Below are positions 7,531 through 45,032 of a stretch of DNA of 64,000 nt, piece by piece (the first letter of the stretch is position 1; every line of letters begins with the position of its first letter). The stretch covers positions 62,001-126,000 of the forward strand of contig VJWM01000196.1 of NCBI GenBank assembly GCA_010909165.1. Reading direction: 5' to 3'. The notes below the pieces were generated by a model that saw nothing but the letters and a program-made list of their open reading frames with translations, was not told where the DNA came from and ran no database searches. The position numbers were made by a program, and so were the translations under genes. The stretch comes from Anthoceros angustus. Lineage: Eukaryota; Plantae; Anthocerotophyta.

Positions 7531-10026
<2,496 letters not shown>

Positions 10027-16821: not shown

Positions 16822-17239
16822 TTCTTGTGCTTCCAAGCCTTCCAGCGGCGCTAGCCGCCCCTGAGAATCAACTCCTCCTGATCCCAACACCGATCCTCAG
16901 AAACGCACGCAGATGCAAAACCGACGTGAGATGTCTGCGCAACATTTCCACGCTGTGGGTGCGATTACTGACAACTGAACAGCCAGCCCCTTGAACTGCA
17001 CGTATCCATATCTCCAGATATGCTCGCGTTTGGCTTGAGGATGACTCGGGCGGCCCCGGAGAGCGGAGCCTCTACGAAGGGGTCACAGTCCCGTTCACAG
17101 GACCCGCTCCACACACCTGTACCGGGTGACCCGATATGAAGTTTCCTTCCTCTCCCTCCTCCTCCTTTTTCTATCTCGATTCCTCCCGCCTCTCTTCTCT
17201 CTCTTCTGCTCGGTTTTCTCGTCCCTCCGCTCGATAGAT

Positions 17240-20996: not shown

Positions 20997-22392
20997 TGCT
21001 AGCTTAGGTTTCCTTTCACTGTCGAGCATCAGTCCTTAGACATTATGTTGTGATTAACCTGAACAGCACAGGTTACAACTTCACGCATTAGTGTCCCTTC
21101 AACTCTGCAAACATGGGTGACGACGACACAATCAAAATACCTGATGGCCTACTCAAAACGTCACTCAACATCAGCATAGACATGTTTAAGGAAAAGGACA
21201 GGTTCGGGGGGGAGAACTATGACATCTGGGTGATGCGTATGAAGGGAGCTCTCCAGAATAAAGGACTCTGGGAGATAACAAACAGAGAAGATGAATTAGA
21301 AGCAGATACAGCTGATGTTACAGCACACAAGGCATGGACAGCTAAAAACAGTGCAGCCATGTATATGATAAGGGGTGGCTTAACTACTGAAATGTTGAGA
21401 CACACCGCCGGTGCTACATCCGCAGCTGATATCTGGTCTAGACTTCGTAACGGCCTCGACCGTTCTCGGCCGTGACGCCCCTCCGAGCGTCCGTTCCCTA
21501 ATACGTGAACTCTACTCCGGCGCAAACGCAACCAGCCAGATGACAACCCTCAGGAATCTTCAATTCTGTAAAATGCGAGATGGTGATTTAGTGGAAAAGC
21601 ATGTTGCTACATTCAGACATCTGGTTTCTAAGCTGGAAGCAGCTACACAAGAAAACGTCAAGGAGGATATGCTAGCAATCTACCTAATGCTTTCCTTACC
21701 AGATTCCTGGTCGAATTTTGTGACCTCGTATAATACATCACAGGCACAAACTCAGAAATTGGCAACTGCTGCCAAAATTAAACTACCTCCTGTGACTTTC
21801 TCTGAGTTAGTGGGATCATTGCTTCAGGAGGAAGCCACAAGAGGTGGCAGCAAACATGGGAAACAGCAAGCCCTCTACACCAACAACTATGGAAGAGGCG
21901 GCAAATCTTACTCTAAAGGGAGACATACCACACCTGGTGCTGGGAGTTCTAAAGGAGCTCCCTCACAGAAGAAACCCAAAATGACCGGAAATGCAACTGG
22001 TGCAAAATTCCCGGCCATTGGGAAAACGAGTGTCGAAAGAAGCTAGCCGGCATACCTCGCAAGGAGGGCAATTAATCTTTGAGACACACGTTGTGGTAAA
22101 GCGATCCTCCCTTCACCGGCGAGGGGTAAGGGAGTTTGCTCAACCTTTAGCCTTTCCCACATGCTTGTCTGCAAAGACAGGATCTAGGCCATTTCATGAA
22201 TGGTATCTAGACACAGGTGCAACACCGCACATATGTTTTGACAGAAATGTTTTTGTCACATATAAACCTGTACAGGACCAGTTCGTCTATCTAGGCGAAG
22301 ACAGAGCACTCGTGTCTCCAGCCAAAGGCACAGTGAGTCTCCCTGTACCTTCAGGGCTTAAGTTGTCTCTCACTAACGTCTACTTTGTACCT

Positions 22393-24548: not shown

Positions 24549-26874
24549 GTCTCCTCCTTTCTTCACCAGGCTTCTTTGCCTCTGCCCTACTGGGCTGAAG
24601 CACTCATGACCGCCGTTTATTTGCGAAACAGATTACCTACCACTGCTATCGGGAGACACCTTTTGAGGCCTTCTTTGGCAGAAAACCCTCTATCCAGCAC
24701 CTTCGTACTTTTGGGTGTATTGCCTATGCTTTTATCCCCAAGGAAAGCGGAAGAAGCTATCTGCAAAGGCCAGAAAACTCCTTATGATAGGATAAACTGA
24801 GGGAATCAAAGCTTACAAATTGTATGATGTACCTCATCAAAAGGTTATCTATGCCCGTAGTGTCACTTTTGCTGAAGGACTTGTTTGGAAATCAGTGGGA
24901 GCTACTTCTCCTCTAGATGACACTGATGTGTCTGCACTTCCTGATGTCACCGTGTTTAATGACTCTACTCCTGTGGAGCTTGCTACTGCAGGGGGGGGAA
25001 GAACCACAAGATCAGTTAGATGAACTAGCAGAGGACGATGCTCTTGCTAATGATCTTGAGGAGCAGCAGCCGCAACCTCCACCCGATGAACGTCAACCAG
25101 AACCAGACCAACCTGTTCCAGATGTCATCTTGGATAGTGACAATGAAGACGAACCACCAGATGAGCAGCCTGAAATGCATGAACCACCTCCACCACTTGA
25201 ACGCAGATACCCTACAAGGGACAGACATGCACCTGATTACTACAAATCACATGACTTTAGATCAGGAGCAGCACAAGCTCATGCTACAAATCTGGAACCT
25301 ATCGAACCTCGTTCTTATGAAGAAGCTTTGAGTAGGCCAGATTCTGCAGAATAGAAAAAGGCCATTCAGTCTAAGTATGACAGTCTCATTAAAAACGGCA
25401 CTTGGGAGCTAGCACAACTACCTCGGACGCAAGATTGTTTCTTGCAAATGGGTCTTTAAGTTGAAGGTTAAAGCGGATGGCACCTTCGACAGGTATAAAG
25501 CTAGACTGGTTGCACGTGGTTTCTCCCAAGTACCAGGACTGGATTACCTGGAAACGTATGCTCCTGTAGTCAAGCTAGCCACATTCCGTATCCTATGCGC
25601 AGTGGCAGCACACAACGATTATGAACTTGATATGTTCGATGTTAAAACAGCCTTTTTACGGCAAATTGGACACAGAAATCTACATGCAGCAGCCAACTGG
25701 ATATGTAGTTAAAGGCAAGGAGGACTATGTCCTACGCCTGATCAAAACTCTGTATGGTCTGAAACAATCTGCATTGGAATGGAATGCTGTCCTTGATGAG
25801 GAACTGCGAGCTTTGAGTTTTGTAAAGTGTACCTCAGATGGTAGCCTCTATGTATACAGAACTGGTGACACAGTTTGTTACCTAGCTGTATATGTGGACG
25901 ACCTTATACTTGCTTGCAACAGTCCCCCATTTATAACAAAGATCAATGGCATGCTATCCAAGAAATTCAAGATGTCAAATCTCGGAGCTTTACAAAGCTG
26001 TCTAGGTATTCATATTCAACGAGATAGGAAACGCAGAATTCTCACTCTCACTCAACCTAGATACCTTCTTGATAGTGCAGACCAGCTTGGACTTAAGGCG
26101 CGAAACCTGCATCCACCCCTTTGCCAAGTGGACTCAAGCTTAGTAAATCTATGAGCCCACAGACACAGACAGAAAAGGACAAGATGGTTCCAGTACCTTA
26201 CCGACAGGGTGTTGGAAAACTCATATATGCTGCAAATACCACTCGCCCAGAAGTGGCTTATTCCACCAGTGTGCTATCACAGTACCTTGAAAATCCTGGC
26301 CAAGAACATTGGACATGTCTTAAAAGGGTTTTCCGGTACCTCAAAGGAACAGCACAGCGTGGAATTGTTTACAGATACATACCTGACGTAGCTATTGACA
26401 TTGATGTCTACAGTTGATTATCTTGGCGACATTGATGAGAAGATCGATCTCGTTACGTTGTCATGTTTCTTTGGAGGACCAATCTGGTCGGTAAAAGCAA
26501 CCTCGGTTGCTCTATCAAGCAAGTGTCTGAGTCCTCACAGTGCAAGGAGATAGCTTGGTGTAAGTTGTTATTCAGCGAGCTTGGACTTCCTCTGCCCACC
26601 TGCACAATGATTAGAACTGATAGTCAGGGCTCAATGAACTTAGCGGCGAAGCCCGTATTCCACTCATGCACGAAGCACGTTGAGGTGGAGTCTCACTTCA
26701 TTAGGGATCTTGTCAAAGGTGGACGGATCATGCTCGAATATGTGCCAACAACAAAAACCCAGCAGACATAATGACAAAAGCTCTGGGAAGAGAGCTGCAC
26801 GAAAGACATATGAGAGGTCTCGGGATGGGGAAGCCAAGTGACTTCCTCAATGTTTCCAACTAGCTACCTAGCCA

Positions 26875-27700
26875 CTAGTCACATCCCCAATCTACACTAT
26901 CTCCCTCTTCACTATCCACTGGCAGACTTGCGCGGCTTCCAAAGGTATCAGGCTCTGAAGAATCTGGGTCATGCTCTGAGACTGTTGTGAAAGTTTCATC
27001 AGACTTAGGGGAGTTTCTCTTCTTTCGCTCTGAATAAGAGATACGCTCTTTAGTCTCCAAGCTATGCTCATCTTCGAGTCTGGCCTCAGAACTTGCACAG
27101 CAAGTGGGAGCAATTAGGGAAGTGGAAGGAACAAACTGGGATGCTGACATATTATGGTGTGGTACTCACGGTAGTAGCTGACGACATGCCTCTCGAATTC
27201 ACGGCAGTGCTCAACCCTCACACGAACCATCCTGAGTCGGGTATACAGACACTTGTACCACAAAGGAGTGCATGGAATGGCGATGGAGCCAAGGCTCACA
27301 ATCTTTGTCTCATCATCAGTCTGTGTACGAAACTTAAGCGGCCTGACTCGGCGGTGGTCCATTCGCGTATTCAAACTCACACCTTTGGGCGAATCTTATC
27401 CGGCGTCTCTGGTGAACATGCGTTCCTCGGTGGCGATCTGCAAGGGATGCCATGCTAGAGGAACCGACATTCTTATGAGAGGACACTGTCCCCAGGCGCC
27501 TCTGCTCTAGAAAAGATTTAGTAGTCCCGCGAGGCCTTCCTCTTGGCCGCCCTCCACCTCTCGCAGCAGGAGCTGGCCAACATCTCTGCTTGTCTTTGGC
27601 CAGTGGAGGCGGTGTTCTAGCAGTCTTGACAAACACCTAAGCTATCGCGATGATACACACGGCACTTAGTAGGAGAGGAGCCGGACTCGAAGAGGCCATC
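26875..27700 (-). pseudogene. Antisense 3' accessory ORF of Copia B (frameshifted), AT-hook-like
   Basis: Consecutive minus-strand ORFs 27334-27636 (GRPRGRPRG), 27114-27380 (ETKIVSLGS..P.TP) and 26875-27150 (acidic/Ser-rich tail). Confidence 0.6.
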
Positions 27701-29038
27701 TGAGCCCTCACGATCTTATGCCCGGCTTGCGAATAAAAGACTCAAAGCATAAAGGAATGCTATAATGAGCGCCGCGCACCTCTCCAAAGTTTCACAGATA
27801 CGCTCCATCGCGTTTCTAAAGAATTAGAGGTGCGGGCGTAGTCCAGTACACACCGACAAGTGGGCTTCACGCTCAGCTGATTTCACAGTCTCATATGCTA
27901 CCCGCGGAGGAGAAGACGAAGAGGAGACGTCCAAATCGTCGTGATCCAACAAGGGGAAGTAAAGGAAGTATTTATGTTAGCCTCATGAGATTAGGTCAAG
28001 ATATATCCAGATATTAAATAGTGTGTACGTAGCTTAAGAGACTTACCTCTTCGCTAGGGTTACGTTGTTTCGTATAGTCACATCCGTTCACTACAAGTTA
28101 AGTTAGCTTTAGGTTTGTCTGAACATATATAGTAAGTTACTTCTTCTTGATATATAATGTAATTATTAATCTAATTGATTTGCATCTATCCATGTAAAAT
28201 GTCAATTCTTGCTACTGAAAGAAGATTCTTCGCGAGACCAGGCACATGGTGCACATCCTTGATTGTACCTTTGGATGGTCCTCCAGGAAGTTGAACCTTG
28301 ATCACACCTCTTTCTTTGATCTCATGTGACCTATTGTCTCCAAGCGCCACCTTATGCCCTGTTAGCATTTCTTCATAGCTTGAGAACCAAGGCCGATTTT
28401 AGGTGAAGTGTTGAGACACTCCAGAGTCGAGATACAAACTCTCATCCTTCTTTGATGGGCGTTGTCATACGGTTGAGACAGTAAAGAGATATTCTTCCTC
28501 CTCACTCACTTGATTGGCTTGTGACTAAGGACCTTTCCCTTCTTCTTCAAGTCAGCCAACCTTGTCATACAATCCTTGGTATAATGGTTAGGCTTTTTGC
28601 AATAATAGTAAGTACCCCATACCTTTTTCTTCGCACCTTTCTCCTTCGATCCTTCTCCAGAGTTGGGTTGTGAAGTCTCCCCATGTGTTATTTCCTTCTT
28701 TGAGAATAGCACCAAGTCTTCTTTCTTGAAGGAATTCTCCAGCTCCTCTTGTAGGAGCAACCTAGCCACCTCATCCAACGTTGGTGGTTTGTCACTTGGA
28801 CGCATTGCTACCGCCGTTTTGAAGGCCAACACAACTTACTTGTATGCGAATGGTAGGCTACTCAGTAACACCATGATAACCTTTCTTTTGGAAGGTTTGA
28901 CGTTCGCCACCTTCATTTAATCCACCAAGTTCTTCAACTTGTTGACGTGTTGTTGAATGGTATCACCCTCAGCCATCTTGAAGTTGGCAAATTGTTGCTC
29001 CAACAGTATTTCATCCACCAAGCTCTTCTTTTCATATG

Positions 29039-29445
29039 TGTTGCAGAGGGTCATCTATGCCGCTTTTGAGGTTCACGCTCACTCAATTGAGAGAGTATGT
29101 CATCGAACACATTGAGGAGGATTGTCGCCAACGCTCGTTTATCTTTCTCATATGGAGCATTGCTGTTATAGCTACTGCATGCTACCTTTCCACCTTTGCA
29201 TGCTGTAGTCTGACACTGTACTTGTAAAGCTTGTCAGACTACATTTCTACTTTTACTTTTAGATCCTACGTTTAGTCAAATTGCATTCCTACTTCTAGAA
29301 TCGGTACTTATAAAAGAAAGCCATCCTTAGGCCTCGCGATCGGCCATCCATCGAAGCCATCCTTGGACCTCGACCGTCCATTAAAGCCATCCGAGTCCTT
29401 GGACCTCGGCCATCCATTGATTATTTGAACAAAATGATTCTAACA
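29039..29445. mobile_element. Probable solo LTR (407 bp, TGTTG...TAACA)
   Basis: TG..CA termini, flanks ATATG/ATGTG (1 mismatch), internal TATA-like site and GCCATCC repeats; it truncates the gag of element A. Confidence 0.55.
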
Positions 29446-29695
29446 ATGTGGATATAGGGAGAGGGATGCTAGGTGGTGCTCGGGCAGGAGGGGGCACCGG
29501 CATGCATCAACCTGCTCGTGCCCCGCCTCAGCATTGACCTCTCCTCCAATTTAGAAGTGTTAGTAACGAAAACGATATAGGGGAGAAACATACGAAAGTT
29601 GTATGTAAGTATTTATTTCATGTTTTATATTTGATTATGATGAATAGAAACCCTAACTAACCGACTTGCCCTGTCTAGGTGAAGGGACATAGCAG

Positions 29696-30678
29696 TTGAG
29701 TTCTCATTTTTGCGAAGGCCAGACAGGAAGAGTCACATCTCCCCTCTATCCTAAAGGCATCCAGTGCATCATGCTTGGATACTCCGATGAGGTAAAGGGG
29801 TTTAGATTATACGATACTACAACCAAGAAAGTCATCTTTAGTAGAGATGTTGTTTTTCTGAGGTTGTGGAACCTAATAAAGGAGTGGGAGCAATGCAAGT
29901 TGTCATCAAGGAATTGAAGGAGCACGAAAAAGCACAAGACTCGGTTCATGAGCAACCTACTCTTAAGCATGCTCAACCTATTCTTGATCATGAGCAACCT
30001 CTACCACAAGGTGACAAAGGAGGTGGAGAAGCCCCGGATGTCGAGGATGATGAAGAGAAGCAAGATCGAAGAGTCCAAGAGGTGCCACTGACCTAGATCA
30101 GGAGATCAACAAGGCGATGGAATTCTTCGCAGAAAATTTTGGAGTCCATGAATGCATGCAAGTACGAAGAGGCTATGTTCACAAATGCTGATGAGCCACA
30201 AAGCTTGAAGGAAGCCTTGGAAGCACCAAAAGCAAAGGAGGGGAAAGAAGCTCTGCAGAGTGAGTATAACTCAGTTATCAAGAACAAGACTTGGGAAATC
30301 ACTCCTCTACCCCAAGGAAGGAAGTGCATAGGATCCAAATGGGTGTTCAGATCAAGTACAATGCTGATGGGAGCATAGAGCGATACAAAGGAAAGGCTGG
30401 TGAGGAAGGGATATACACAAGTGCCAGGTATTGACTACACCGACACTTTCTCCCATGTTGCTAAGATAACATCTATTCGTATACTTTTAGCAATAGCAGC
30501 TATCATGGATCTGGAGATACATCACATGAATGTCCTAACTGCGTTTCTCAATGGAGATGTGGAAGAAGAGATCTACATGAACCAACCAGAAGGACATGAA
30601 GTGCCAGGTCGGGAAAATGAGGTATATAAATTGCTAAAGGCACTCGATGGTTTTAAGCAATTTGCACTTACCTGGTAA
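29696..30678 (+). mobile_element. Copia integrase C-terminal/RT fragment
   Basis: CIMLGYSDEVKGFRLYD..VIFSRDVVF; EPQSLKEAL; [28 protein letters not shown]; [19 protein letters not shown]. Confidence 0.85.
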
Positions 30679-31579
30679 GACATGATAATTTTTGAAGGGG
30701 GGGAATATAGTAACCTCCTTCGCTCGAAACAACACCCCCTTGTCACATTTTAAACCCTTCCTGCGATAACATATCTGCCAAGCTTTGATAATGGGCACAC
30801 CCTTTTGTGAGTACATGCCTTAAATAAAAGACGCACTTTCAATTCTACACCCCATAACTAGAGCATTGTAGGGCGCCGGCCCGTCTACGTTTTTGTAGAA
30901 TGCACAGTGGCATGGGCTGCCGTTTGCATTTGTTTATTACAACCGAAAACATTTACTTTTCAAGTGGTGGAACACAATAAAAATCATGCCTGTACTTGCG
31001 AGAGTCTCATTTTAGTATTCGTGAAAACCTTGCAATAAACAATTGCTCAAGGAGGAAATGGTCATCAGCATCAACAATAGTCATTCAAGAGGGCGGCCTA
31101 GCGACTAAATTATACCTTCTTGCGCCCGATCTTGAGTCGGGACCACCGCCAAATTCCGAAGGCGGTCCATATCCTCCGCGTAAAAGCTGTCATTCTCCTC
31201 CAATGCTTGCTCGTATTCATTAGTATAATTCTTGGGCTGATCTTCGGACGGTGTCGACTGCCACATAGCATTTAGGGTCTGCTAACCCTCATCCAAAAGC
31301 TCGCCAGTCGTGGTCTTCAACCTTCTGACACTCAATGCAACCACTTCGACTTTAAGGCAATGCCAACATCCTTAAAATAAACAAAGTTGGTTGCCCATGC
31401 GCCCATGCAAGCGTCCTTGAAATCAACAAAGTTGGGCTATTAAGAAGGTAGAAATTTCGAACCCAGACACTACTCATTACTACACTTTGTTTCCAACGCT
31501 TGAGCAACTATCCCAAGTTGCAAAGCTCTTGAGCCGCTAAATATTTATTTTATTCAAAGCAGCCTATGAGCAGGCCATG

Positions 31580-31720
31580 GGGAGGGCACTGGCCGGCCGA
31601 CTGGCGCCCTCCCCTAGCTCCACCCGCATGCACCGACAGGTGGTGCTAAGGGAGGGCTCCGGTCGGCCGGCGCCTTCCCTTAGAGCCACCCTACGATGCA
31701 TGCGGGTGAAGCTAGGGGGG
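31580..31720. repeat. GC-rich compound inverted repeat
   Basis: CCCCTAGCTCCACCCGCATGCA pairs with TGCATGCGGGTGAAGCTAGGGG; GGTGGTGCTAAGGGAGGGC pairs with GCCTTCCCTTAGAGCCACC. Confidence 0.8.
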
Positions 31721-32215
31721 GAACAAGAAGGGAACGGCAGGTATCCTATCACCAACGGAAGGTGTGGCCCATTTGCAGGAAGGGTTAAAAGATTTGCGTC
31801 CACAGACGACTGCTGAAGTGTACAAGTGGTGCGAAGCCTTTCGGGTGGACCAGAAGAAGATTGCGGTCATTGTGGAGAATAACATTGGGCTAGTGCTAGA
31901 GCGTCCCTAGAAGTGGTTTTCACGTGTAGAAGTGGATCATACAGCCCGACCACTACAAGTGCCGAATGAAGCTTTGTTGGATGAGGCATTATCGAGGGAC
32001 CTCCCACAACATGATATGTACTTAGGGGTGTGGACTGCGGACTCTCCCCCTTAGGAAGGTAATAAACCGTTTTTTGTTTTTCGTTAGTGTAGAGTGGAGA
32101 ATAAGGCGGAAAAAGGGAAATAAGGTTAGGAAAAGAGGAGATGGTGATGGACGGTAGAAAGTGATGAGGGCGGGTGGCAGAAACCGGCGAGCCACTCCGC
32201 CTTGAACTCGGAGTG

Positions 32216-35200
32216 GGCAGCTCTGGGTGAACTCGGAGTGGGCAGCTCTGGTGAACTCGGAGTAGGCTGCGATAAGTCCGCCAGGAAAAGTAACTTCGGG
32301 AAAGGGATGGAGCGCAATTGGCAGGGGGGCCACGTGGGCCAGTCTTGAGAGGAGAAGCAGGGGATCGGCGGACCCGACCTTGAGGGTTGTGGCCGTTATG
32401 GGCGGTAACCATGACCCAAGTACATACGCAAGGAGGCGGCAGGCGCAAGGCTAGAGTACACGATGCAAGGCCAGCGATTACAGGCGTGAAGGACGCGTCC
32501 TCCATGCTTCAATTACTTCCGGCCGAGAAGGCCATTCTCTCGGAAACTTCATTTTTTTTGGTCACTTGCGCTCAGGCATCCCGCTCTGGCGCTTTCTCTT
32601 CAGCCCATGCGCACCTACAGCCATCGCCTCCAGGCGGGCGCTCATCGCGGAACTTGGCGGGAGCATTCTCACCCACCACCTCACGTGACATACCGGCCCG
32701 GTGGCAGTGTGGGACCCAAGAAGGCGGCGGAGGTCCGGAAGCCTGCACCTAGTAGAGAAAAACATTGTCACCAGGCACTACCTAGATTTCGAACCCTGGC
32801 TGGCGGAGGCAGAGGAGCTGGTCCAGGAATGGCACCTAGACATCTTCCAGGCGGTGTGGACCTTTGTGGATGACACGGGTACGCCTAAGATGTCAAGCGG
32901 CCAACAACAAAACTGTCCGGTCCAAGAGCCTGAGGGAAGACCCAAGGAGATGGACCGTGGAGGTCCTGAGTGCGGTCTACAATCGCCCAGTGGAGGAGAT
33001 CGAGGGCATAGTTCCGGAGCCCCTCAAGGTAAAAGGGAAGGTGGAGGCGGCGAAGGCGGCACTTCTGAGGCCGGGGATGCAGCGGTCCTCCAACGGGTGG
33101 TTGATGTCGGACCTGTTGGATCAGGGCGTATCCCGTGCGACCCCCCATTGTGTGGCATGCCCTGATGATCAGGTCACATGCAGCATGCAATCGCGGTGTG
33201 CAAACCCCGGCAAGCGCTTCAACTGGCGGAACGTCTCGTGGAACACAAAATCGGAGTGGCCATACGAGCGGCTAACCCACCGCTGGCAGGAAACCCTTTG
33301 GCTGCGGACATGGCATTTCTCGGGCCGCAAAGTGTTAGGGAGGATTGTAATCGGGCGGCCGGCGATGCAGTACATTGGGGTTTGAACTGCGAGGAAGGTG
33401 CATGGGCCCGGAAAAAGCGCTCTCTTCGGAGGAAGTAGGCGGCGCGAGGTCTGGAAGGTGTTGAGGCCACCGACTCTGCACCTTGGCCATCATCTGGGGC
33501 AAAAAGCGGCTGTGAAGGGTGCCCATGGACGTGGCACGCGGCGGCCTTGCAAGGCAGGCGGACGAAGAAGGAAGAGGGTGGCCAGTGGGCCAGCACGGGC
33601 TGCATCAACAGGACTTGGCGGAGGGCCATCAACCTGAGGACGGTGAACACTTCATGCAATTCCCGTCTGACGGCGGGGATGAGGGGGTGGAGATGAAGGA
33701 TGCATAGGAGGCCAGTTGCATCGCATGCCACTAAGCGTATACGATTTGGTGGTGCAACACTTGCGAGAGGCCATTGAAAGGCCTACCGGTGGAGCTAGCT
33801 GCGGCTTGAGCACGGTGACGAGGCTCCTACATCGGCTGCAGCATGGCCTTGAGGTGTATGGGAGGCTGTATGCAGTGCGGGAGGCAGCTCTGGGTGAACT
33901 CCGGGAGGGGCGCGCGGACGAACTCCGGAGTAGGCTGCGATAAGTCCGCCAGGAAAAGTAACTTCGGGAAAGGGATGGAGCGCAATTGGCAGGGGGGCCA
34001 CGTGGGCCAGTCTTGAGAGGAGAGCAGGGGATGCGGACGAGACCGCGAGGTTGTCGGCCGTTATGGGCAGGTAACCATGACCCAAGTACATACGCAAGGG
34101 AGGCGACGGCGCAAGGCTAGAGTACACGATGCAAGACGTGATTACGGCAGGGGGCGTCCTCCATGCTTCAATTACTTAGAGAGAAGGCCATTCTCTCACT
34201 TCAGCATTTACGGTCACTTGCGCTCAGGCATCCCGCTCTCTGGCGCTTTCTCTTCCGACGCCCAAGCGCACCTACAAGCGGCCATCGCCTCCGAACTGAG
34301 CGCTCATCGCGGCGGAACTTGGCGGGAGCATTCTCACCCACCACCTCACAGCAGCATACCAGCCAGCGCGCGAGTATGGGACCCAAGAAGGCGGCGGAGG
34401 TCTGGAAGCCCTGGCACCTAGTAGAGAAAAACATTGTCACCAGGCACTACCTAGATTTGAACCACAGGTGGCGGAGGCGGAGGAGGAGTCGGGAGAATGG
34501 CACCTAGACATCTTCCAGTGGTGTGGACCTTTGGTGACACGGAGTCTCGCCGGAAGATCTTGTGGCCAACAAAATCCGGTCAAGAGCACGAGGAAGACCC
34601 AAGGAGATGGACCGTGGAGGTCTGAGTGCGGTCTACAATCGCCCGGATGGAGAGATCGAGGCATAGTTCCGGAGCCCCTCAAGGTAAAAGGGAAGGTGGA
34701 GGCGCGGCGGCACTTCGAGGCGGATGCACGGTCCTCCAACGGGTGGTTGATGTCGGACCTGTTGGATCAGGGCGTATCCCGTGCGACCCCCCATTGTGTG
34801 GCATGCCCTGATGATCAGGTCACATGCAGCATGCAATCGCGGTGTGCAAACCCCCGGCCCGCAAGCGCTTCAACTGGCGGAACGTCTCGTGGAACACAAA
34901 ATCGGAGTGGCCATACGCGAACAGCTAACCGAGCCGTGCCGCCTGTAGGAAACCCTTGGCTGCGGACATGGCATTTCTCGGGCCGCAAAGTGTTAGGGAG
35001 GATTGTAATCGGGCGCCGGCTGTGCAGTACGAGCTGCAATTGGGGTTTGAACTGCGAGGAAGGTGCATGGGCCCGGAAAAAGCTCTCTTCGGAGGAAGTA
35101 GGCGGCGCGAGGTCTGGAAGGTGTTGAGGCCACCGACCGCACCTTAGCCATCATCCAGGGCAAAAAGCGGGCATGAAGGGTGCCCATGGAGCGTGTGCGC

Positions 35201-35510
35201 GGCCTTGCAAGCGGCGGACGAAGAAGGAAGAGGGTGGCGGTGGGCGGCCGAGGCACATCAGGACTTGGCGGAGGGCCATCAACACCCGAGGACGGTGAAC
35301 ACTTCATGCAATTCCCGTCTGACGGCGGGGATGAGGGGTGAAGGAGATGAAGGGATGCATAGGAGGCGGGGTACGCGCCATAAGCGTATACGATTTGGTG
35401 GTGCAACGCTGTGAGGCCATTGAAAGGCCTACCGGTGGAGCTAGGGCGGCTTGAGCACGGTGACGAGGCTCCTACATCGGCACGGCATGGCCTTGAGGTG
35501 TATGGGAGGC
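32216..35510 (+). repeat. ~1.67-kb tandem duplication (32216-33870 / 33883-35510) of the 5' part of the DDE element
   Basis: Shared peptides in both copies (IVPEPLKVKGKVEA, HCVACPDDQVTCSMQSRCANP); the second copy is indel-rich. Confidence 0.9.
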
Positions 35511-37149
35511 TGTCCGGTCGGGTGTGCAGCGATTGCCACGCACACACCCATCACCCGATGCAGCGTGAATCTTTGGAATACGATTCTGCGGCAGGCAAGA
35601 TCGACAGTCGGCGATGCGCATCCGCGGCGTCGATACCAATGCGACACCCATGTACATGTGGCATATGGATTGTAAGTGCGTGATGCAGTCGGGGCTGTCT
35701 GCGATGTTCGCAGGATCGCGTTGCATGGAAGAAGTGATTGCAGGAGTTGTGATTGCAATCGGTGATGGGTGCCTAATGCCTTGTGCGCAGCTTATGACAA
35801 GATGTACCAATTCTACTTCAGAGTGCATGGGGCCATAGATGGGGCAACCCATTACGCCCCGGCCCAGATCTTGGAGGATAACAAGCGGCACGAGATTTTC
35901 AACGCCTATGTGGAAGCGTTGAGGAAGTTTGGGCATCCGCAGCGGATTCGGTCGGACTACGCAGCAGAGCACAACCTAATAGAGGCAGATATGAACCAAG
36001 CGAGGCCAAGGGCACATGGAAGCAACGTCATCCGCAGCCCCTCTATGCACAAGCAGGTAAAAGTTTGGTGCTTGGTCTGCGTTGTCCTTGTCTGCAATGA
36101 CAGCTGGTGAAGGCAGTGAATGCGGGATTGTTGCAGAGGATTGAGCATTTCTGGCGGTCCTTGGGAGAAAAGTGGGCGTTCCTCTACAAGGGGTACATGA
36201 TGGATATGGTGAGGAGCAGCGAATTGGACATCACCAACCCCTGGCACATCCATTCGCTCCACGTGACCTTCATGCCCACGATGAGGGCGGAGCTCAAGCG
36301 TTGGAGGCAGGTATGGAATAGGCACCGGGTGCGGAAGATCGAGGCGGCCAGCGGGACATCCCGGCCATGTGCACACAATCGCATTCCAAGAAGAAGGTAC
36401 AAGGGTGGGTGCGACCACCCGCATATGGGGCTGAGGAGGACGATGGCGAGGAGTTCGATGTGGGTGGCCCTCAGTATGCACAAAACGTGGCCCCGGAGAT
36501 GCCACCACTCAGCGGCATTGAATTGCTGACCCCGGTGAGCAACTGCATGACAAAATAAAGGGTCGTTAGGGTGTTATCAGCATGTTAAGTAGTTAAATAA
36601 TTAAGTTAAGTCAGCTTACCCTTTCACTAGGGTTACGTCCCTTAGACGAACAGTTACGACTTTTCAAGTTCTTAGTTTTAGTTTTGCTTTTCTGCATAAG
36701 CAAGTTACTTCTTTATTGATATATACGATGCAATTATATTAATTGATCCGCGTTATCCTAATACCGCGTCATGGTATCAGAGCTTCTATAGCGTGGATTG
36801 CATTCAAGAGAATGCGCATCAAATTGTGCACGTTTGGATTTGCACAAACATGTGTTTTTGGTTCTTATCTTTTTAGAAATGTTCTTTAAAGATAGCCCAA
36901 AATAATCAAGAACTTACACTCTGATTTGCTTCTTTATAATTTAATCTGCCTGTTTTTAAGATTGCATTTTGCAGATCTGGTGAGCATTCTAGCGTATCTA
37001 TGCCAGATTGCTATTCCAGCAATTCTGGAATAGGTGCGCTAGGACACCCGTCAGATGCTGCAACTTGCATTTAGAAGGCATTTATAAAATAAAGAAAATA
37101 AGGATGCATTCTGAACGCATCTCTACAATAAGAGTCACAGCCATCAGAA

Positions 37150-37873
37150 ATGGCACAAAATGAAGGCCAGATTTGGCAACCACGGCCTGCTGAGCGGGTT
37201 CAGCGCAACCGCCCAACAAGAGGACAGCTTAACGAAAGGAATGTAGCAGAACGACTCCATCAAAACACACAAGAGTGGATTTACAGAAACCAGGATAGAC
37301 CTGCTCATAGCAGTCGCCTACGCGAGGCCTACAATTTGCTGGTTTCAACTCTCTACCCAGATTACCAAAACCTAATTGCTGGTCCTCAAGAGCAGGTCAT
37401 AGGCGCTGATCATCAGAACTTGCGCCCCAGAGTTGCTCTAGATGTTCACGAGAACCCTAACGGTTTCTTCACAACACAGCCTGCACCACAGGCCACAATC
37501 ACACAGATTATTTCCAGGGTGGAATCACATGCCTTGTTTGTAGACAGAAGATTTGTGAATCTCAACAAGAGCGTGGCGGTGTGAATGTGGATTTACATGA
37601 CTTGAGGGAGCAACTCATCACTTGACTACAAGTTGCACGCTCTTCCGCCGTAACTTTTGAAGAATCCAATTCCGCACATTTGTCAGAAGATCCGTGAAGA
37701 GTACTAACGGTAGTCAACGTTTTGTTGACCCAAATTCTTGTCCTTCATGTTCAACCTATGAACTCAATAGGCTCATGTTAAGGAAACATCAGATAGCAGA
37801 AAAGGAAGCACAACAGGCAGCCAGTTTGCATGAGGTAATCAGACCTGTCGACATGCTAGCTGCCCTTTTGTAG
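37150..37873 (+). CDS. Accessory 5' ORF of Copia C (frameshifted after ~37575)
   Basis: ATG at 37150; manual translation of the downstream frames gives NVDLHDLREQL and DPNSCPSCSTYELNR..EVIRPVDML, matching the Copia B ORF. Confidence 0.65.
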
Positions 37874-40800
37874 CTTTGTCTCTGCATATAGGCCAGTAGT
37901 TTCATTTCCCTCTAGACCTCCAGCAATGGGAGACACAGCCTCTTCATCAGTTGTGGGAGGTGGGGAAGGCTTTAAGGAGAAAGACAGGTTCGATGGACGC
38001 CAATATGACATCTGGGTCATGCGCATGAAAGGCGCACTCCAAAGCAGAAAACTGTGGAAGACAACACAAGGGTTAGATAAAGCACCAGAAGCAGAAACAG
38101 CCCTGCAAAACGAGGCACGTGAGCAAAGGAATGAAGCTGCCATGTACCTCATAAGAAGTGGACTCACAGCCGACATGATGCATCAAACATCAGGTTGTGA
38201 AACTGCTGAAGCAATCTGGGACCGCCTGGAAGAGCTGTATGCTGGAAAGAATTCTGCCAATCAATTATCAGCCCTTAACAACCTTCAGCAGTGTAAGATG
38301 CGTGAAGGAGAATCTATAGAGAAGCATATTATGACCTTCAGAACCCTAGTATCCAAGCTAGAACAAGCTACTGGCGAAACAATCAAGGATGAGATGCTAA
38401 CACTTTACCTGTTACTCTCATTACCTCCCTCTTGGTCACACTTCGTGACATCGATCCATGCATCCCAGTTACAGGTAGCTAAATTGGCTAAGTTAGCTGA
38501 TCTCAAAGTACCAGAATTAACATTTGCAGAACTTGTAGGGTCACTCCTGGAAGAGGAGTCGACCAGAGGTGTATCAGGCAGGCGTGCTGGCAAGCAGCAA
38601 GCGCTGTTCACATCCAACCGTGGTCGAGGTGGTGCAAGACCATACTCCAGAGGCGGTGGATCTGGTTCATCACGAAGTGGCAGCTCGCAAGGAGGCCACT
38701 CATCACAATCTGCAAATAAGAAAAACAAGAAATCGTGGACTTGCAACTGGTGCAAAATCCCAGGTCACTGGGAGAGGGATTGCAGGAAAAAGCAAGCGAG
38801 GCTTACCTCGCAAGGAGGGAAGTCGAGACCAACGTTGTGTTCAAGAAGCAACCATCGCCATCGCTCATGGTTGGGACAGGAGGGTACACTAACTCTATCT
38901 CCTCACCCACATGTCGTCACTAAAACAACTGCCGCTTCAGATATAGTGGTACCTTGATACAGGGGCCCGCTCACATGTGCTTCAACAAATGCTTTCACAA
39001 CATACAGTGCCTAAGGATCAAGATGTTTACCTAGGTGATAACGGATCACTTGTCTCTCCGTATAGGACTGCTGAGTTGCTCGCATCCGGAGTCATGCTTT
39101 CACTTATAGATGTGTATTATGTCCCCGAGATGACACGCAACCTTATTTCGCTAGACGCCCCAACATAGACAATACCACATTCTGTTCACGAACACAGAGT
39201 GTAAGGTGATAGATGCCTTTAATCCTAGCAGAGTCCTAGCCTACGGGTCCTCAGAACATGACCTGTTTCGCTTGCATACCAAGGGTGGGATAGTGCAGTC
39301 TCATCTCACACATAAGGACTCCCCTGCCTCTGCACAACAAATTGCAAAGACTAAGTTGTGGCATGCACGCTTAGGTCACCCACACAGCAGCAAGTTGCAG
39401 AAATTAGCTGCTAGTGACCTATATGCTGATGGTCCTATAGGCAAGTTAGTGCCTTTACCTCTTTGTGAGCCATGTGTCCTGGCTAAGCGCCATCAAGCAG
39501 CTTTCAAGAATAAAGCTCCTCACAGGGCTTCCGAAGTCCTTGAGCTGGTGCATACAGACCTGTGTGGCCCCTTGTCTAAGCCTTCTTTCGGTGGTGGGAG
39601 ATACTTCCTTACCTTCACAGATGACAAGACACGTTTTGTCAGTGCTTATATCCTTAAAGCTAAAAGTGAGTGCTTCTCACACTTCAAAGCTTACCTTAAG
39701 TTTGCAGAACGCTGGACAGGGAAGCAATTGAAAACCCTACGTTCAGACAATGGTGGGGAATTCACCTCACATGAATTCCAGGCTTTCTGTACTGAAGAAG
39801 GAATTGGTCGGCAGCTAACAGTTGTGTATACCCCTCAACAGAACGGGGTCGCAGAGCACATGAACCTTACTTTGCAGGAGATGACCTCCTCATTGTTGAA
39901 CCACGCTCACCTCCCTTTGTCCTACTGGGCAGAGGCCCTCACAACTGCTGTTTACCTAAGGAACAGGTTGCCCACTAATGCTGTTCAAGGAATGACTCCC
40001 TACGAAGCCTTTTATGGACACAAGCCCAAGATCCTGCATCTCAGGACGTTTGGTTGTATAGCTTATGCCTTTGTCCCCAAGGAAAAGCGCAAGAAGCTGC
40101 AGCACAAGGCCAGAAAGTTGCTGATGTTAGGTTATACTGAAGGCATCAAGGCATATAAACTGTATGATGTGCCTACTAATACTGTTACATACTCCAGGAG
40201 TGTTACCTTTGATGAACAGAGTTTCCGCCGGAGCTTCGACGACTCGCCTGGCGATGTGGAATCTCGAGCAGATGTCTCATATTTTGATGACCTCCCTGAG
40301 GACGTTGCTCCTGCAGATGGGGAACCTGAGGATCCGCCAGCATATCAGGAGGAACCTGCATTTGTAGTTGCTGATCCAGTGCAGCAGCAACATCCTCGTG
40401 CGCTCTTACCTCCACTTGACGAGGAAGAGGCAGTCGCAGCAGAGTCTGATGCTGATGATGCTGCCCAGGTAGATCTTGACATCCAGGAACCACATCGTGA
40501 GCAGCCCGATCCACCTGCTGATCCACCTGAACGCCGTTATCCCCAGCGTGAACGTCGTCCTCCCGACCATTATCAGTCCATTGACTTCAGGGCACCTCAA
40601 GCACATGCTGCTTTCCTTGATCCCATTGAACCACAGTCATATGAGGAAGCTCTCAGGAGGCCTGATTCTGCAGAATGGAAGAAGGCAATTCAGTCCGAGT
40701 ATGACTCACTCATTAAAAATGGGACTTGGGAATTGGCCAAGTTACCTCCAGGTCGAAAGATGGTATCCTGCAAATGGGTATTCAAGCTTAAGGTTAAAGC

Positions 40801-42217
40801 TGATGGTACTTTCGACAGATATAAAGCTCGGCTTGTAGCACGAGGCTTTACACAAGTACCAGGGCTTGACTATTTTGAAACATACGCACCTGTTGTAAAG
40901 ATGGCCACCTTTCGTACCATATGTGCTATAGCAGCACACAAGGATTACGAGTGCAGATGTTCGATGTCAAGAGCTTTCTTACATGGAAAGCTTGACACGA
41001 GATCTACATGCGGCAGCCGCTGGATATGAGGTAAAAGGAAGAGGACCATGTCCTGCGACTCATAAAACCTTGTATGGCCTCAAACAGTCAGCACTAAAGT
41101 GGAATGAGGCTCTTGATGAAGAGCTCCTAGCTTTAGGCTTCGTCAAGTGTAAGGCCGATGGGAGCCTCTACGTATACAAAAAAGGGGACACAGTATGCTA
41201 TTTAGCAGTGTATGTAGATGACCTGATCATAGCCTGCAACAGTGGGGCATACATAACAAAGCTGAATCTGTTACTGGCAGAGAAATTTGAGATGTCCAAT
41301 TTAGGTCCTCTGCAGAGCTGCCTAGGTGTTCATATACAAAGGAACAGGGACAAGAGGGTGATAACCCTTACCCAGCCTAGGTACTTACTTGACAGTGCAG
41401 AACAGATGGGCTTAAAGGACGCGAAGCCTGCCTCTACCCCACTACCTACAGGGCTTAAGCTCAGTCGTGACATGAGCCCTGAGACACAACAAGAGAAGGA
41501 AGCTATGGTTAACATTCCATACAGAAGAGGAGTAGGTAAGTTGATCTATGCTTCTAATACAACGAGGCCCGACATCTCTTTTGCCACGAGTCATCCCAAA
41601 GATCTTGAGACCCTGTAAGGTGAGCATTGGCTTAAAAGGGTGTTCAGATACTTAAAGGGAACCTATGATGTGGGACTTAAATATGAATACAGCCCCGAAG
41701 CTCTAGACCTGGCAGTATACACAGACTCTGATTATGCTGGTGATGTTGACTCTAGAAGGTCAGTGTCAGGCTATGTTGTAAGCTTTGCCGGAGGGCCCAT
41801 ATGCTGGAGCAGCAAAAAGCAACCCACAGTAGCCACCTCGAGCACAGAGGCCGAGTATCGGGTTTTAACAGCAGCAGCTAAGGAAGTAATCTGGCTCAAA
41901 CTGCTGCTCAAGGAAATGGGACTGGACCTTCCTACATGCACAAGTGTAAAGACCGACAATCAGGGCTCTATGGCACTTGCTAAAAACCCAGTGTTTCATT
42001 CAAGGACCAAACATGTTGAAGTAGAGTACCATTTCATTCGTGAACAAGTGTCTGCAGGCAAGATAGTGCTGGAATATGTTCCCACAGCCGACAACCCTGC
42101 AGACATACTTACGAAAGCACTGGGGAGAGACCTGCACACAAGACACCTTAAAGGTCTTGGGTTAGGGAAGTCTGAAGACTTCGCAACCCACAAAGTCTGA
42201 AAAACAGATATCTATGC

Positions 42218-43244
42218 CTAGTAACCCCGGTGCCACGAGGCTGGAATAATTGCCGCCTCCCGAATCGAATCGGGGTCTTGGGGAGTTGCACTCACACCGC
42301 CCGAGCCATCAAGATCGCTCGCTCACGCTGGTGAAGCTCTCTTGACCCGTGGGCTATTACGTCTGCGTCTCTCTTCATATGAAATCCTCTCAGGGGAGAC
42401 GAGGCGCATTTCACGAAGTCTTATCTCGGACCACAGCAGATGGTAGCAGCGTTTTTATAAGCAGTGGGAGCAAGGCATGAACAGGATCACCGGATTGCGT
42501 ACACACACACACACGTAAACTCAAGGAAGGACGTGACACTATCGTAAAAGGCGACCATATGCCACGGAAACTCCTTGCGGGGTTGCACCTTAACGCTTCA
42601 TGAGGATGCCGAAACGGCATCCGCATCTACGGAGTGCCAGGATTGTGCATACTTCCTAAACCCACAATCTTGGTTTCCTCCAGATAGTCGTTCGTGTCCG
42701 GAAACAGCAAGGGTTTTGGAAGTTGGCTCTCAGATTTGGCATACTCATACTCAGGCTCCGAACGGGCGCCTATGGCAGGCCTTGAACTCGAAGCAGCATG
42801 CCAAGAAGGCCCTGGCATCTCAGTTGTAGCAGCTCTCCCGCGGCCTCGGGCAGTACCTCTGCCTCGGCCGCTGCCCCGGGGACGACCTCTCGGACGCTTA
42901 GCAGGCTGTTCCTCAGTTCCGCTTGTGTTCCTGACAGGTGTCCGAGCTGCCTTGGGTGCGAATCGCCCCTTGCTGTTACGCACATAGGTGCGCTGCTTGT
43001 TGGGCACTGCATCTTCAGAGGAAGACGACATCTTGAGCAGGAGGATCTCAAGCCTGAGCTGAACAATGAGAGAAAGGGCGTAAACGAGGCTTAAATAGCA
43101 GGCGCACCTCAGTACGAGGGGCTGCATGCTGGCTGCCTCCATAGCACTTCCAAGCGTGAGATGGAGCGTGAGATAGAGCGTAATGGATTGCAGAGTACGC
43201 AGACGTGAAGGCGCCGAAGCTGAAGAGACTGTCACAAGGAGCAT
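42218..43244 (-). CDS. Antisense 3' accessory ORF of Copia C, AT-hook/RG-rich (interrupted)
   Basis: KRPRGRPRGSGRGRG; EETKIVGLGSMHNPGTP is homologous to the Copia B antisense ORF. Confidence 0.65.
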
Positions 43245-45032
43245 GAGCTGAAGTTCTAGAAGACTGTCAACACTTAACCTGCTTCAACAAGTGGGAGTGA
43301 CGAAATAAAGGGTCGTTAGGGTGTTATCAGCATGTTAAGTAGTTAAATAATTAAGTTAAGTCAGCTCACCCTTTCGCTAGGGTTACGTCCCTTAGGCGAG
43401 CGATTCGACTTTTCAAGTTCTTAGTTTTAGTTTTGCTTTTCTGCATAAGCAAGTTACTTCTTTGTTAATAAATACGATGCAATTATATTAATTGATCCGC
43501 GTTATCCTAATACCGCGTCACTGCAGGCTGCATGTCCATATATATTGTCTGCAGGTTACAACATTGTCGAGGGTAGGGAGGGCGCATCGCTGCCATATGT
43601 GCAGCCATGGGGAACTGAATCGTGTGGGGCACTGCTGTGGGTTGTGCAGGAACTGCAGATGGCGAGGGACAATGCATATGCAAAGGGCTTGGAGGACATG
43701 GACTTCCTCCCGGACATGTATCGGCTGCACATGGCACTAACAACACTCTGCAGGGAGTGCATGAGTACACGGGACGCATTGCCCGAATACCTCCACCGGT
43801 GGACGGAGGCTGAAGCCACCCCGTGGGCGTGGACGGCCATCACCCTGCTGCGGGCTGTGGTGCACCAGGCGTGAGGGGCATGTGGCCCGACGGCGGCCCT
43901 TCCCGGTGAGCCGGGTGTAGGTTGTGCAGCCAGCGCTCACCATGACCTGGGAGCACTGACAATGTGGATTTCTTTGTTCTGTCCTTTTGAGACGTGAGCC
44001 CAGTGGTGGCTTTGTTGTGGTCGAATGTAAAGGCTGCTTGTGTGAAGATGTTGTGCGCTATCGCGCGAGGCCTGTATGGCTGGCAACTGCAATCGCACGA
44101 CGCCTGGATGGCTGCGATAGCCAGGCGCGTGAGGCGTACATGGCGCCTCCAGGCTATCAGCCACAAGGGCCTGTATGGCTGCGAAAGGCAGTGGCGCTCC
44201 GCGCAGATGGCTCCTCACGCTACACACCATAAAGGCTGGTGGCCGGTTTCCTTATGGCAGCGGCGAGATGGGGCCATGCGAATGGATGTGCGATGGCCCA
44301 TGCCCTGACAACCCTAAAAAAGAAAACCTTGTGTGTCACAACCAAAAAAGATTCTTCACACACACACGATAGGCTTAGTGACGAGATCGGGACACGAGGG
44401 GCAGGCGGCCACGGCCGATGTCGTCAAGTGTGTGACACCAGAAGTTTTACGGTGGGAAAACTTCTTTTGTCACCATCGAAAAAAGCCCTAAAGGGCTTCC
44501 TGACGAGATCGGTATTCCATAGAATGTCATGTTGCATTTATTAGGGTATTTCCGGGAGGGCGTGGGCCAGGGCCCGTCTTGTTTGCAGTGCTATACAAGA
44601 AAAGGTCCTGCAACACCTGCTAATGGGACAATTCTGTTCACTACAGAAGTAGGAGTTGCAGGGTTTCTTCCGCAGGCACCTGCAAAGTGGCAGCTCTGCA
44701 TATGAGAGGGCATTTACATTCCCAGAATCAAGAGCTGAGGTTTTTGTAGCCGCGTCGTGATAAACATGTCGGGAAAGTCCGAAAGCATTGTTGAGGTGCT
44801 TTATGAATAGATAGTGTGCCGAGGCGCAGCTGCACCAGCTACAGGATCCTACTTCCGGCACAAAAGAAAAACAAAAATACTTTTTGTGACGAGATCGGTA
44901 CGCCATACTAAAGTAAAGCTTCACACTTCGGTTCGGTCTTCAAGCCGTTTGCTGCCGAGGAGACTTCTACATGCGGCCATCGAGACGTTTTGTTTCCCGT
45001 GGTTTCCTTGTTCCTGTGTTGCTTCCGCAGCT

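Follow-up and report, generated by a model that had tools for sequence, protein, structure and literature searches.

Two complete Ty1/copia elements, B and C, are present in the window, that is, in the whole stretch of 64,000 nucleotides of Anthoceros angustus DNA that was analyzed (Table 1). Both elements have paired LTRs, a 5-bp TSD (ATTCT in B and CTGCA in C), a tRNA-Met PBS (TGGTATCAGAGC, at 20210 in B and at 36772 in C) and a polypurine tract (PPT), and the LTRs of C have TG..CA ends. Copia polyproteins match both elements in tblastn searches, and the Pfam domains of C (Retrotran_gag_2, gag_pre-integrs, rve, SH3_retrovirus and RVT_2) follow the order gag-(protease)-integrase-RT-RNase H, which is that of Ty1/copia. 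In B, gag-pol is severely disrupted, and 22466-24194 holds three copies of a unit of 716 bp; in C, the gag ORF is intact, and pol contains one frameshift and one stop. The gag and pol proteins of B and C are only about 50-60% identical to each other, and the closest relatives in a pol search have at most 48% identity to the element. Both elements are dead and belong to a single Ty1/copia lineage of a land plant of bryophyte grade, within which they have diverged. The sense-strand 5' ORF region is conserved between them, and therefore the three-gene layout that had been proposed for these elements in the original prediction is plausible.

In both elements, about 1085 nt separate the pol stop (26861-26863 in B and 42198-42200 in C) from the PPT, in agreement with the approximately 1.1 kb noted before. 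This spacer is nearly filled by a gene of about 300 codons on the minus strand, which is convergent with pol and begins at an ATG common to B and C, about 150 nt inside the LTR edge. The gap between the antisense stop and the pol stop, formerly estimated at about 11 and 17 bp, is exactly 11 nt in B and 17 nt in C. The AT-hook motifs and the common block that had been recognized on the minus strand of the two elements are present where they had been placed: the minus-strand ORF of C (42627-43244) has AKRPRGRPRG inside and ETKIVGLGSMHNPGTP at its end, and two minus-strand ORFs of B contain GGGRPRGRPRG (27334-27636) and ETKIVSLGSIAIPCTP (27114-27380), respectively. However, the antisense reading of copy B is no single ORF but consists of four pieces in different frames (27808-27719, 27636-27334, 27380-27114 and 27150-26875). 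Likewise, the candidate stop of C at 17 nt from pol exists, but several frame changes have to be crossed to arrive at it, the ORF ending right after the ETKIV block, and the start common to both copies is not the one at 43244 of C. The presence in B and C of an antisense gene that is convergent with pol and has a canonical AT-hook core and further conserved blocks is thereby confirmed. The gene is found in both of the two related elements within the window, and a tblastx comparison of the third Copia family of the window detected no homology.

Table 1. Coordinates of the two elements, their antisense genes and the conserved parts of these genes
Feature	Position	Strand	Remarks
Element B, Ty1/copia, complete	19965-28204	+	LTRs 19965-20209 / 27960-28204, 97% identical
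Element C, Ty1/copia, complete	36548-43520	+	LTRs 36548-36771 / 43298-43520, 95% identical
Polypurine tract	B 27947-27959, C 43285-43297	+	~140 nt from antisense ATG
Antisense gene, copy B, pseudogene	26875-27808	-	Common ATG 27808 to stop 26875-26877
Antisense gene, copy C, pseudogene	42218-43142	-	Common ATG 43142 to stop 42220-42218
N-terminal conserved piece, B	27719-27808	-	Hydrophobic RCA..YALSL; Kyte-Doolittle 17-residue mean 2.5
N-terminal conserved piece, C	43032-43142	-	Hydrophobic RCA..YALSL; Kyte-Doolittle 17-residue mean 1.9
AT-hook core RPRGRPRG, B	27526-27549	-	
AT-hook core RPRGRPRG, C	42873-42896	-	
ETKIV block	B 27264-27314, pairs with C 42630-42680	-	
Block 3 of B, VRVEHCREFERHVVSYY	27171-27221, pairs with C 42544-42594	-	
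Block 4 of B, ..ERISYSERKKRNSPK	27004-27069, pairs with C 42347-42412	-	59% amino-acid, 48% nucleotide identity
Candidate intron GT..AG, 74 nt, B	27092-27165	-	Phase 2; would join ORFs 27380-27114 and 27150-26875 in frame

The encoded protein has a basic character, with a pI of about 10 over the 171 residues that are intact in C, and comprises, from the N-terminus to the C-terminus, a hydrophobic segment, a basic patch (P.K.R.Y.R.S.GRF..K.ARTP), one AT-hook (RPRGRPRG), a series of C-terminal blocks (E[FY]EYA, ETKIV.LGS, V.V...EF..H.V.[FY]Y, ERISY.ER.RRNSP and E[ST]FT[ST]VSE) and an acidic tail. The hydrophobic N-terminal segment upstream of the AT-hook had not been noticed before. In both copies, the R-G-R-P core with basic flanks occurs at colinear positions. 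It should be noted that the AT-hook is a short motif, bare RGRP occurring nine times in the six-frame translation of the window, and that the Pfam model AT_hook, which is very short and often fails to score with single hooks, gave no match at E-values up to 10. Between C and B, seven of the eight codons of RPRGRPRG differ, all of them synonymously and one as AGG versus CGT; in YALSL, synonymous differences are found at all five codons.

When the spacers of B and C were compared with tblastx, the antisense-frame HSPs scored 33.6, 28.6, 26.3 and 21.2 bits versus a maximum of 22.1 bits in the sense frames; the best HSP per shuffle scored 20.1 +/- 1.9 bits, with a maximum of 26.7 (200 shuffles). 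The colinear chain score was 136 for the antisense and 76 for the sense strand (shuffles 57 +/- 13, maximum 102), and a frameshift-aware alignment yielded 225 for the antisense versus 117 for the sense strand (shuffles at most 61). Thus, in both the tblastx chain and the frameshift-aware alignment, the antisense scores exceed every shuffle and are about twice as high as the sense-strand scores. Because the frameshift-aware sense alignment also exceeds the shuffles, it might be argued that the sense strand is coding, as in a Sirevirus-like downstream ORF, and that the antisense signal is its shadow. However, a partial shadow on the opposite strand is expected, the best sense HSP lies within the shuffle range, whereas three antisense HSPs are at its upper limit or beyond, and the RPRGRPRG region, when it is read in sense, encodes unrelated peptides in B and C. 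A sense ORF of the Sirevirus env-like type downstream of pol is not supported, the sense-frame signal of the tblastx comparison being within the range of the shuffles, and the probability that the sense strand is the coding one is close to negligible.

A blastn comparison of the spacers detected the ETKIV block alone, the DNA similarity being otherwise almost nil. As gag and pol have diverged by about 50% at the amino acid level, a neutral spacer would retain no similarity. Aligned residues show codon switches between TCN and AGY for Ser, CGN and AGR for Arg, and CTN and TTR for Leu, and switches of codon family that involve 2 or more nt were counted 17 times in the antisense and seven times in the sense alignment. 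It is therefore very improbable that there is no gene at all and that the spacer is non-coding, with chance ORFs arising from GC-rich sequence and with blocks that represent cis-acting DNA or RNA signals. The GC content of the spacer of 52-55% does favor long random ORFs (the sense ORF 27093-27458 of B has 121 codons), and the ETKIV block, which the original prediction had considered as a possible cis element, is indeed the one block that is also similar as DNA (66% over 50 nt). Nevertheless, most blocks are devoid of DNA conservation, no Rfam family matches the spacer region, switches within the six-fold codon families occur at aligned Ser, Arg and Leu residues, and it is the antisense-frame scores that exceed all 200 shuffles, while the sense-frame scores do not. 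The pN/pS ratios on the optimized frameshift-aware alignment of the two copies, both broken, were 0.54 for antisense and 0.57 for sense and thus do not separate the strands, so that the case rests on the alignment scores and the codon switches. Taken together, the amino acid blocks kept despite the near absence of DNA similarity, the scores above the shuffles and the common ATG and stops indicate that the common ancestor of B and C had a real antisense protein-coding gene. Selection at the protein level maintained this gene while the DNA of the two families diverged until it could no longer be aligned.

Both copies in the window are pseudogenes, which decayed after the families had diverged; their pseudogene state is an addition to what had been observed originally. 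Copy B contains one stop (TAA 27718-27716), two or three frameshifts and one change of frame for which a GT-AG intron could account, the frame changes being located near 27640, 27350 and 27140 (the last one at the candidate intron), and open pieces of 100, 88 and 91 codons have survived in it. Copy C is intact for 171 codons, up to TAG 42629-42627, beyond which the frame changes at least four times (near 42632, 42594, 42520-42432, 42346 and 42317). The phase-compatible pair that delimits the candidate intron of B is GA/GT at 27165 and AG at 27092, the AG being preceded by CTAAT at a distance of about 20 nt and the 3' part being rich in pyrimidines. At the corresponding place, C has GA/GT in the same phase at 42520, but TG replaces AG at 42433-42432. 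The best-looking donor of B, GTGAGT at 27169, is without a phase-compatible acceptor that would preserve the SE.RL residues, which are conserved.

In C, at least four frame breaks fall within the distal 0.41 kb of the antisense gene, versus two in 2.8 kb of pol; this is a hint that the whole gene, or else its C-terminal half, had already become dispensable by the time C inserted. This distribution of breaks and the pseudogene state of both copies would also be consistent with a passenger, that is, a host gene or fragment that was captured by the ancestor of both families, had no role in the life cycle and left remains that decay slowly; moreover, plant LTR elements carry extra ORFs of diverse kinds, for which repeated acquisition is assumed (PMC6317226). 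Such an origin is nevertheless unlikely: position, orientation, start and stop are identical in families with so diverged gag and pol proteins, no host homologue of the antisense protein was found among 5.8 and 1.8 billion proteins, and amino acids have been kept in spite of saturation at synonymous sites, a pattern that calls for prolonged purifying selection within the lineage of the element.

Searches for relatives of the antisense protein, in which copy B was represented by its separate ORF pieces, retrieved no homologue of the 205-residue ORF of C in a protein database and none in two metagenome scans with B and C pieces. No piece of the protein had a Pfam match at E-values up to 10, the Transposase_28 domain (PF04195) being absent from every one of them; a PDB sequence search gave nothing better than E of about 1 (designed ankyrins), and two ESM-atlas searches gave nothing usable. 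The single HMMER match among 1.8 billion representatives, P0121, is encoded on a metagenome contig of 4.7 kb and has tandem repeats, and as its E-value is built from four copies of one weak match, it was treated as chance. Structure prediction, which had been proposed for the domain from the ETKIV block onward, led to no confident fold: the AlphaFold2 model of B 27117-27350 with the C pieces has a pLDDT of 46.8 and consists of helix only. A chromo or chromoshadow domain is likewise unsupported, with no Pfam, solved-structure or atlas match in addition to this model.

ORFs located antisense between pol and the 3' LTR form an established category (aORF-3R, Vicient and Casacuberta 2020; PMC7264820), to which the coding regions of B and C correspond in position and in their orientation antisense to gag-pol, and Neumann et al. 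(PMC6317226) reported 582 Copia elements with extra ORFs. The designation of the locus as an undescribed system was therefore overstated; 'undescribed variant' fits, and the gene is classed as a variant of the known Ty3/gypsy antisense extra ORFs. The aORF-3R of the Ty3/gypsy Tat elements (maize Grande gene23, rice RIRE2 and Silene Retand; PMC7264820; PMC11963269) has the same antisense position between pol and the 3' LTR, is kept within its lineage, is without clear database homologues and is predicted to encode a nuclear or DNA-binding accessory protein. However, in the Tat elements the spacer measures 3-6.5 kb and often contains tandem repeats, and the majority of these elements encode Transposase_28, whereas B and C are Ty1/copia elements with a 1.08-kb spacer that is almost wholly gene, with no TRP28 match and with an AT-hook. 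Sirevirus (SIRE) elements with an env-like ORF are also Copia elements with an extra gene downstream of pol, but their extra ORF has sense orientation (eORF-3'F, PMC6317226), in contrast to the antisense gene of B and C, which converges with pol. Retroviral antisense genes (HTLV-1 HBZ and relatives; the analogy is made in PMC7264820) are likewise located at the 3' end, possibly spliced, and encode a nuclear regulatory protein, but there is no sequence or domain relationship, as the B/C protein has neither a bZIP nor any Pfam match, and the promoter and the splicing of its gene are putative. The AT-hook proteins HMGA and plant AHL share the R-G-R-P core with basic flanks; unlike these, the B/C protein has only one hook, lacks PPC/DUF296 and, apart from the short acidic tail, shows nothing of the acidic architecture of HMGA, and no homology to HMGA or AHL was detectable in protein-database and Pfam searches.

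On balance, we consider it probable that the ancestral antisense gene was under protein-level selection and encoded a putative nuclear accessory factor that binds AT-rich DNA. The gene would have been the third or fourth of the ancestral Copia element and would have been driven by its own antisense promoter in or beside the 3' LTR. Via its AT-hook, the protein might bind AT-rich DNA, for example, the element's own LTRs, which are AT-rich as had been claimed (30-37% GC versus 52-55% in the spacer), and it might tune transcription, silencing or integration, a role like the one that has been suggested for retroviral antisense genes and for the antisense ORFs of the Grande, RIRE2 and Retand elements. 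It is a motif of eight residues that suggests a possible function in chromatin or LTR binding or in anti-silencing. As 11-17 nt are all that separates the two stops, a transcript of the antisense gene will inevitably overlap pol at its 3' end, and thus the antisense RNA could itself be the functional product, through dsRNA or siRNA formed with this part of pol or through Ty1-like interference with transposition, the ORF being secondary. Ty1 is regulated by antisense RNAs, and this has been discussed for plant elements (PMC7264820; PMC12786077). However, an RNA function fails to explain the conservation of amino acids with different codons at near-zero nucleotide similarity, and we regard it as quite unlikely to be the main role of the locus. 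Antisense RNA and protein roles could coexist.

A more far-reaching version of the accessory-protein reading is doubtful. The whole Copia lineage of this early-diverging land plant would then consist of multi-gene retroelements in which a 5' gene in sense orientation and gag-pol are combined with a 3' gene that is antisense and contains an intron. The antisense protein would have its hydrophobic N-terminal helix as an anchor and would use the AT-hook to bind the AT-rich DNA of the element's own LTR, steering integration or shielding the element from silencing. If true, this would be a retrovirus-like accessory-gene strategy that evolved independently in Pseudoviridae.

Backward genes of this kind have so far been described mainly in Gypsy-type elements, and antisense accessory genes of plant LTR elements have been characterized almost only in the Ty3/gypsy Tat lineage; the present gene belongs to Copia. 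A compact, motif-bearing gene in a small Copia element of a small-genome, bryophyte-grade plant might offer a simpler system for asking about function, with regulation of the element, targeting of integration and counter-silencing as candidates. The two elements also suggest that standard screens may under-count accessory genes, because screens that need uninterrupted ORFs of at least 250 codons (PMC6317226) miss shorter or intron-containing ones.

Two complete Ty1/copia elements of the window, B and C, are flanked by 5-bp target-site duplications (ATTCT in B, CTGCA in C), and both have a Copia-type primer-binding site (TGGTATCAGAGC) immediately 3' of the 5' LTR and a purine tract preceding the 3' LTR. 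The gag, gag-pre-integrase, integrase, SH3-like and RVT_2 domains of C follow one another in the Copia order. The gag and pol proteins of B and C are only ~45-70% identical, and the two elements represent separate families within one lineage. Both are dead copies: over 2.8 kb, the pol of C is interrupted by one frameshift and one stop, and the coding region of B is broken many times. A 716-bp unit is found three times in tandem within the integrase region of B (22466-24194; 99% and 84% identity). The LTRs of B (19965, 27960) begin with TA (TAAAGG..) and not with the usual TG, right after the target-site duplication or the polypurine tract, whereas the LTR ends of C are the canonical TG..CA.

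In both elements the spacer from the pol stop to the polypurine tract is ~1085 nt long, and its minus strand carries a coding region with an AT-hook, preserved as a pseudogene in either copy. The motifs, frames and distances reported for these minus-strand ORFs in the original prediction proved correct when the stops and pol ends were rechecked; the convergent frames of pol and the antisense gene end 11 nt (B) and 17 nt (C) apart. An upstream ATG of C at 43244, which opens the mechanical ORF, was rejected as the start, as the conserved reading begins at the ATG at 43142 instead.

Features of elements B and C and conserved layout of the antisense protein (N- to C-terminal), in window positions
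Feature	B	C	Strand	Remarks
Complete Ty1/copia element	19965-28204	36548-43520	+	LTRs 245 bp, 97% identical (B); 224 bp, 95% identical (C)
Sense blocks between primer-binding site and gag	20589-20954	37453-37810	+	conserved B vs C
pol stop	26861-26863	42198-42200	+	
Antisense-gene stop	26875-26877	42218-42220	-	
Common start ATG of antisense gene	27808-27806	43142-43140	-	~150 nt inside 3' LTR edge
N-terminus: ME, then hydrophobic segment RCA..YALSL				common to B and C
M[AS]SSS				after hydrophobic segment; common to B and C
Basic patch P.K.R.Y.R.S.GRF..K.ARTP				after M[AS]SSS; common to B and C
AT-hook RPRGRPRG	27549-27526	42896-42873	-	
Variable linker				after AT-hook; RGG-rich only in C
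E[FY]EYA, then [KR]PL.F and ETKIV.LGS...P.TP				after linker; common to B and C
V.V...EF..H.V.[FY]Y block				after ETKIV block; common to B and C
SE.RL..E..L...ERISY.ER.RRNSP[KR], then E[ST]FT[ST]VSE				after V.V...EF block; common to B and C
Tail, acidic and serine-rich				reaching stop beside pol; common to B and C

The similarity between the two spacers might be ascribed to chance ORFs or cis elements, and one segment does match as DNA: permissive ungapped blastn returned a single significant segment, the ETKIV block downstream of the AT-hook (50 nt, 66% identity). The spacers are otherwise essentially unalignable as DNA, and no Rfam family matches the region. In tblastx, which handles all six frames alike, four colinear minus-strand HSPs were obtained (33.6, 28.6, 26.3 and 21.2 bits), and the best HSP of 200 shuffles had a mean of 20.1 +/- 1.9 bits and peaked at 26.7. 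The possibility that the sense strand is the coding strand was weighed with the same comparisons, in which the best plus-strand HSP reached 22.1 bits. The colinear chain scored 136 in the antisense and 76 in the sense frames, versus 57 +/- 13 for shuffles (maximum 102), and a frameshift-aware global codon alignment scored 225 in the antisense and 117 in the sense direction, versus at most 61 for two kinds of shuffles (24 each). B also has a sense-strand ORF of 121 codons (27093-27458, +) that overlaps its antisense gene; as C shows no conservation of the encoded peptide, this is probably a shadow ORF of the GC-rich coding sequence.

The codons bear on the choice of strand as well. The peptide RPRGRPRG is the same in B and C although seven of its eight codons differ, including AGG versus CGT, and all five codons of YALSL differ synonymously. 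Aligned residues also change codon family: three to four serines between TCN and AGY, leucines between CTN and TTR, and arginines between CGN and AGR. Multi-step synonymous pairs number 17 in the antisense and 7 in the sense alignment. Block 4 (ERISY.ER.RRNSP) is 59% identical in amino acids versus 48% in nucleotides. The pN/pS ratio was set aside as evidence, because it is ~0.55 on either strand in alignments that were optimised for amino-acid similarity. The substitution pattern in the antisense frame is protein-like, and from these two copies, both decayed, it is concluded that the common ancestor of B and C had a protein-coding antisense gene and that its protein sequence was under selection while the two families diverged.

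The hydrophobic segment near the N-terminus is transmembrane-like (Kyte-Doolittle 17-residue mean of 2.5 in B and 1.9 in C), and for the 171 intact residues of C the pI is ~10. Searches were run with separate pieces of the broken copies. No homologue was found among 5.8 billion clustered proteins or, with HMMER, among 1.8 billion representatives, where the lone match was rejected as a repeat artefact; two metagenome scans, the sequences of solved structures and the ESM atlas gave nothing related, and Pfam gave no match. The structure prediction for the ETKIV-onward piece of B is of low confidence (pLDDT 46.8), and because of this, and with no related sequence, a chromo/chromoshadow-like impression gained by eye is unsupported. 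The sole interpretable feature of the protein is the canonical AT-hook core in its basic context.

In C, 171 codons are intact (43142-42630) before a TAG, and the conserved blocks after it are no longer in this frame. Frame changes occur near 42632, 42594, 42520-42432, 42346 and 42317; a (TG)n run (42502-42517, -) lies between blocks 3 and 4, where the frame changes. B has a TAA at 27718-27716 and frame changes near 27640, 27350 and 27140. B and C share the position of the change between block 3 and SE.RL. In B, near 27140, no mutation is needed to account for it if a 74-nt GT..AG candidate intron (27165-27092) is assumed; this intron would be in phase 2, have a pyrimidine-rich 3' part and contain CTAAT ~20 nt before its AG. 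The corresponding GA|GT of C, at 42520, shares this phase, but TG is found at the position of the AG, and with two decayed copies the intron is a candidate only. An antisense-oriented intron could survive retrotransposition, because the sense genomic RNA does not splice it. The last 0.41 kb of the antisense gene has at least four frame breaks in C, a higher density than the two in 2.8 kb of pol in this copy; the difference could stem from chance, from introns that were not recognised, or from a C-terminal half that became dispensable early.

Since the antisense gene is convergent with pol, any antisense transcript must overlap the pol 3' end, and the function could be carried by this RNA, a reading to be weighed against the protein-like substitutions. 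Alternatively, the gene might be a passenger, carried by two families in the same position. The most likely reading is that it works through its protein: the gene would have its own promoter, either in the ~150 nt between LTR and ATG or in the 3' LTR itself, and its product would be nuclear, bind AT-rich DNA and modulate transcription, silencing or integration of the element. The LTRs of B and C are markedly AT-rich (30-37% GC versus 46-48% in the internal regions and 52-55% in the spacer), and are thus plausible targets of the AT-hook. Comparable roles have been discussed for retroviral antisense genes and for the antisense ORFs in Grande, RIRE2 and Retand elements (PMC7264820; PMC11963269).

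ORFs that lie antisense between pol and the 3' LTR form an accepted category, whose described cases are Ty3/gypsy elements (PMC7264820). In a large survey, the only lineage-typical extra ORF singled out for Copia is that of SIRE, which is on the sense strand (PMC6317226), whereas the gene of B and C is antisense and convergent with pol. In the same survey, 582 Copia elements from 45 groups had extra ORFs with no fewer than 250 uninterrupted codons (PMC6317226), and therefore antisense ORFs in Copia cannot be called entirely unseen. In the searchable open literature, no paper was found in which an extra ORF of LTR retrotransposons is connected with an AT-hook. The antisense AT-hook gene in Copia is thus rated as a new form of a known category.

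The extra sense-strand 5' ORF of B and C, a separate prediction, shows conservation as well: its blocks NP.GF.TT..AP...ITQ and TN.S.RF..PNSCPSC score 46.0 and 49.6 bits, above the shuffle maximum of 25.8, and lie in different frames in C. Their conservation supports an extra 5' gene and a multi-gene layout of the two elements. A third Copia family, present as two near-identical copies on the minus strand, also carries an antisense ORF of its own between pol and the LTR (56275-56829 and 59556-60043, +), with a hydrophobic N-terminal stretch followed by a basic KRQRR patch, a layout like that of the B/C gene; it has no AT-hook, and tblastx detects no similarity to the B/C antisense gene.

The host is a bryophyte-grade land plant: among its genes, TsaD/Kae1 is a single ORF of 468 codons (14755-16161), whose protein is 70-73% identical to those of mosses and liverworts and resembles seed-plant ones less. 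Positions 3700-16900 are syntenic with 1800-12400 of L001, a contig of a related species in Logan (run SRR33208241), on which no Copia sequence was found; the two have MRP_L53, PEMT, an aminotransferase, an EMC8/9-like gene, Tom7 and TsaD in common, with ~74-85% nucleotide identity in the matching pieces and ~78% for the neighbouring host genes. Between B and C, in a GC-rich (59%) stretch at 32-36 kb, there is an exact direct repeat of 126 nt (33083-33208 and 34729-34854), 1646 bp apart.
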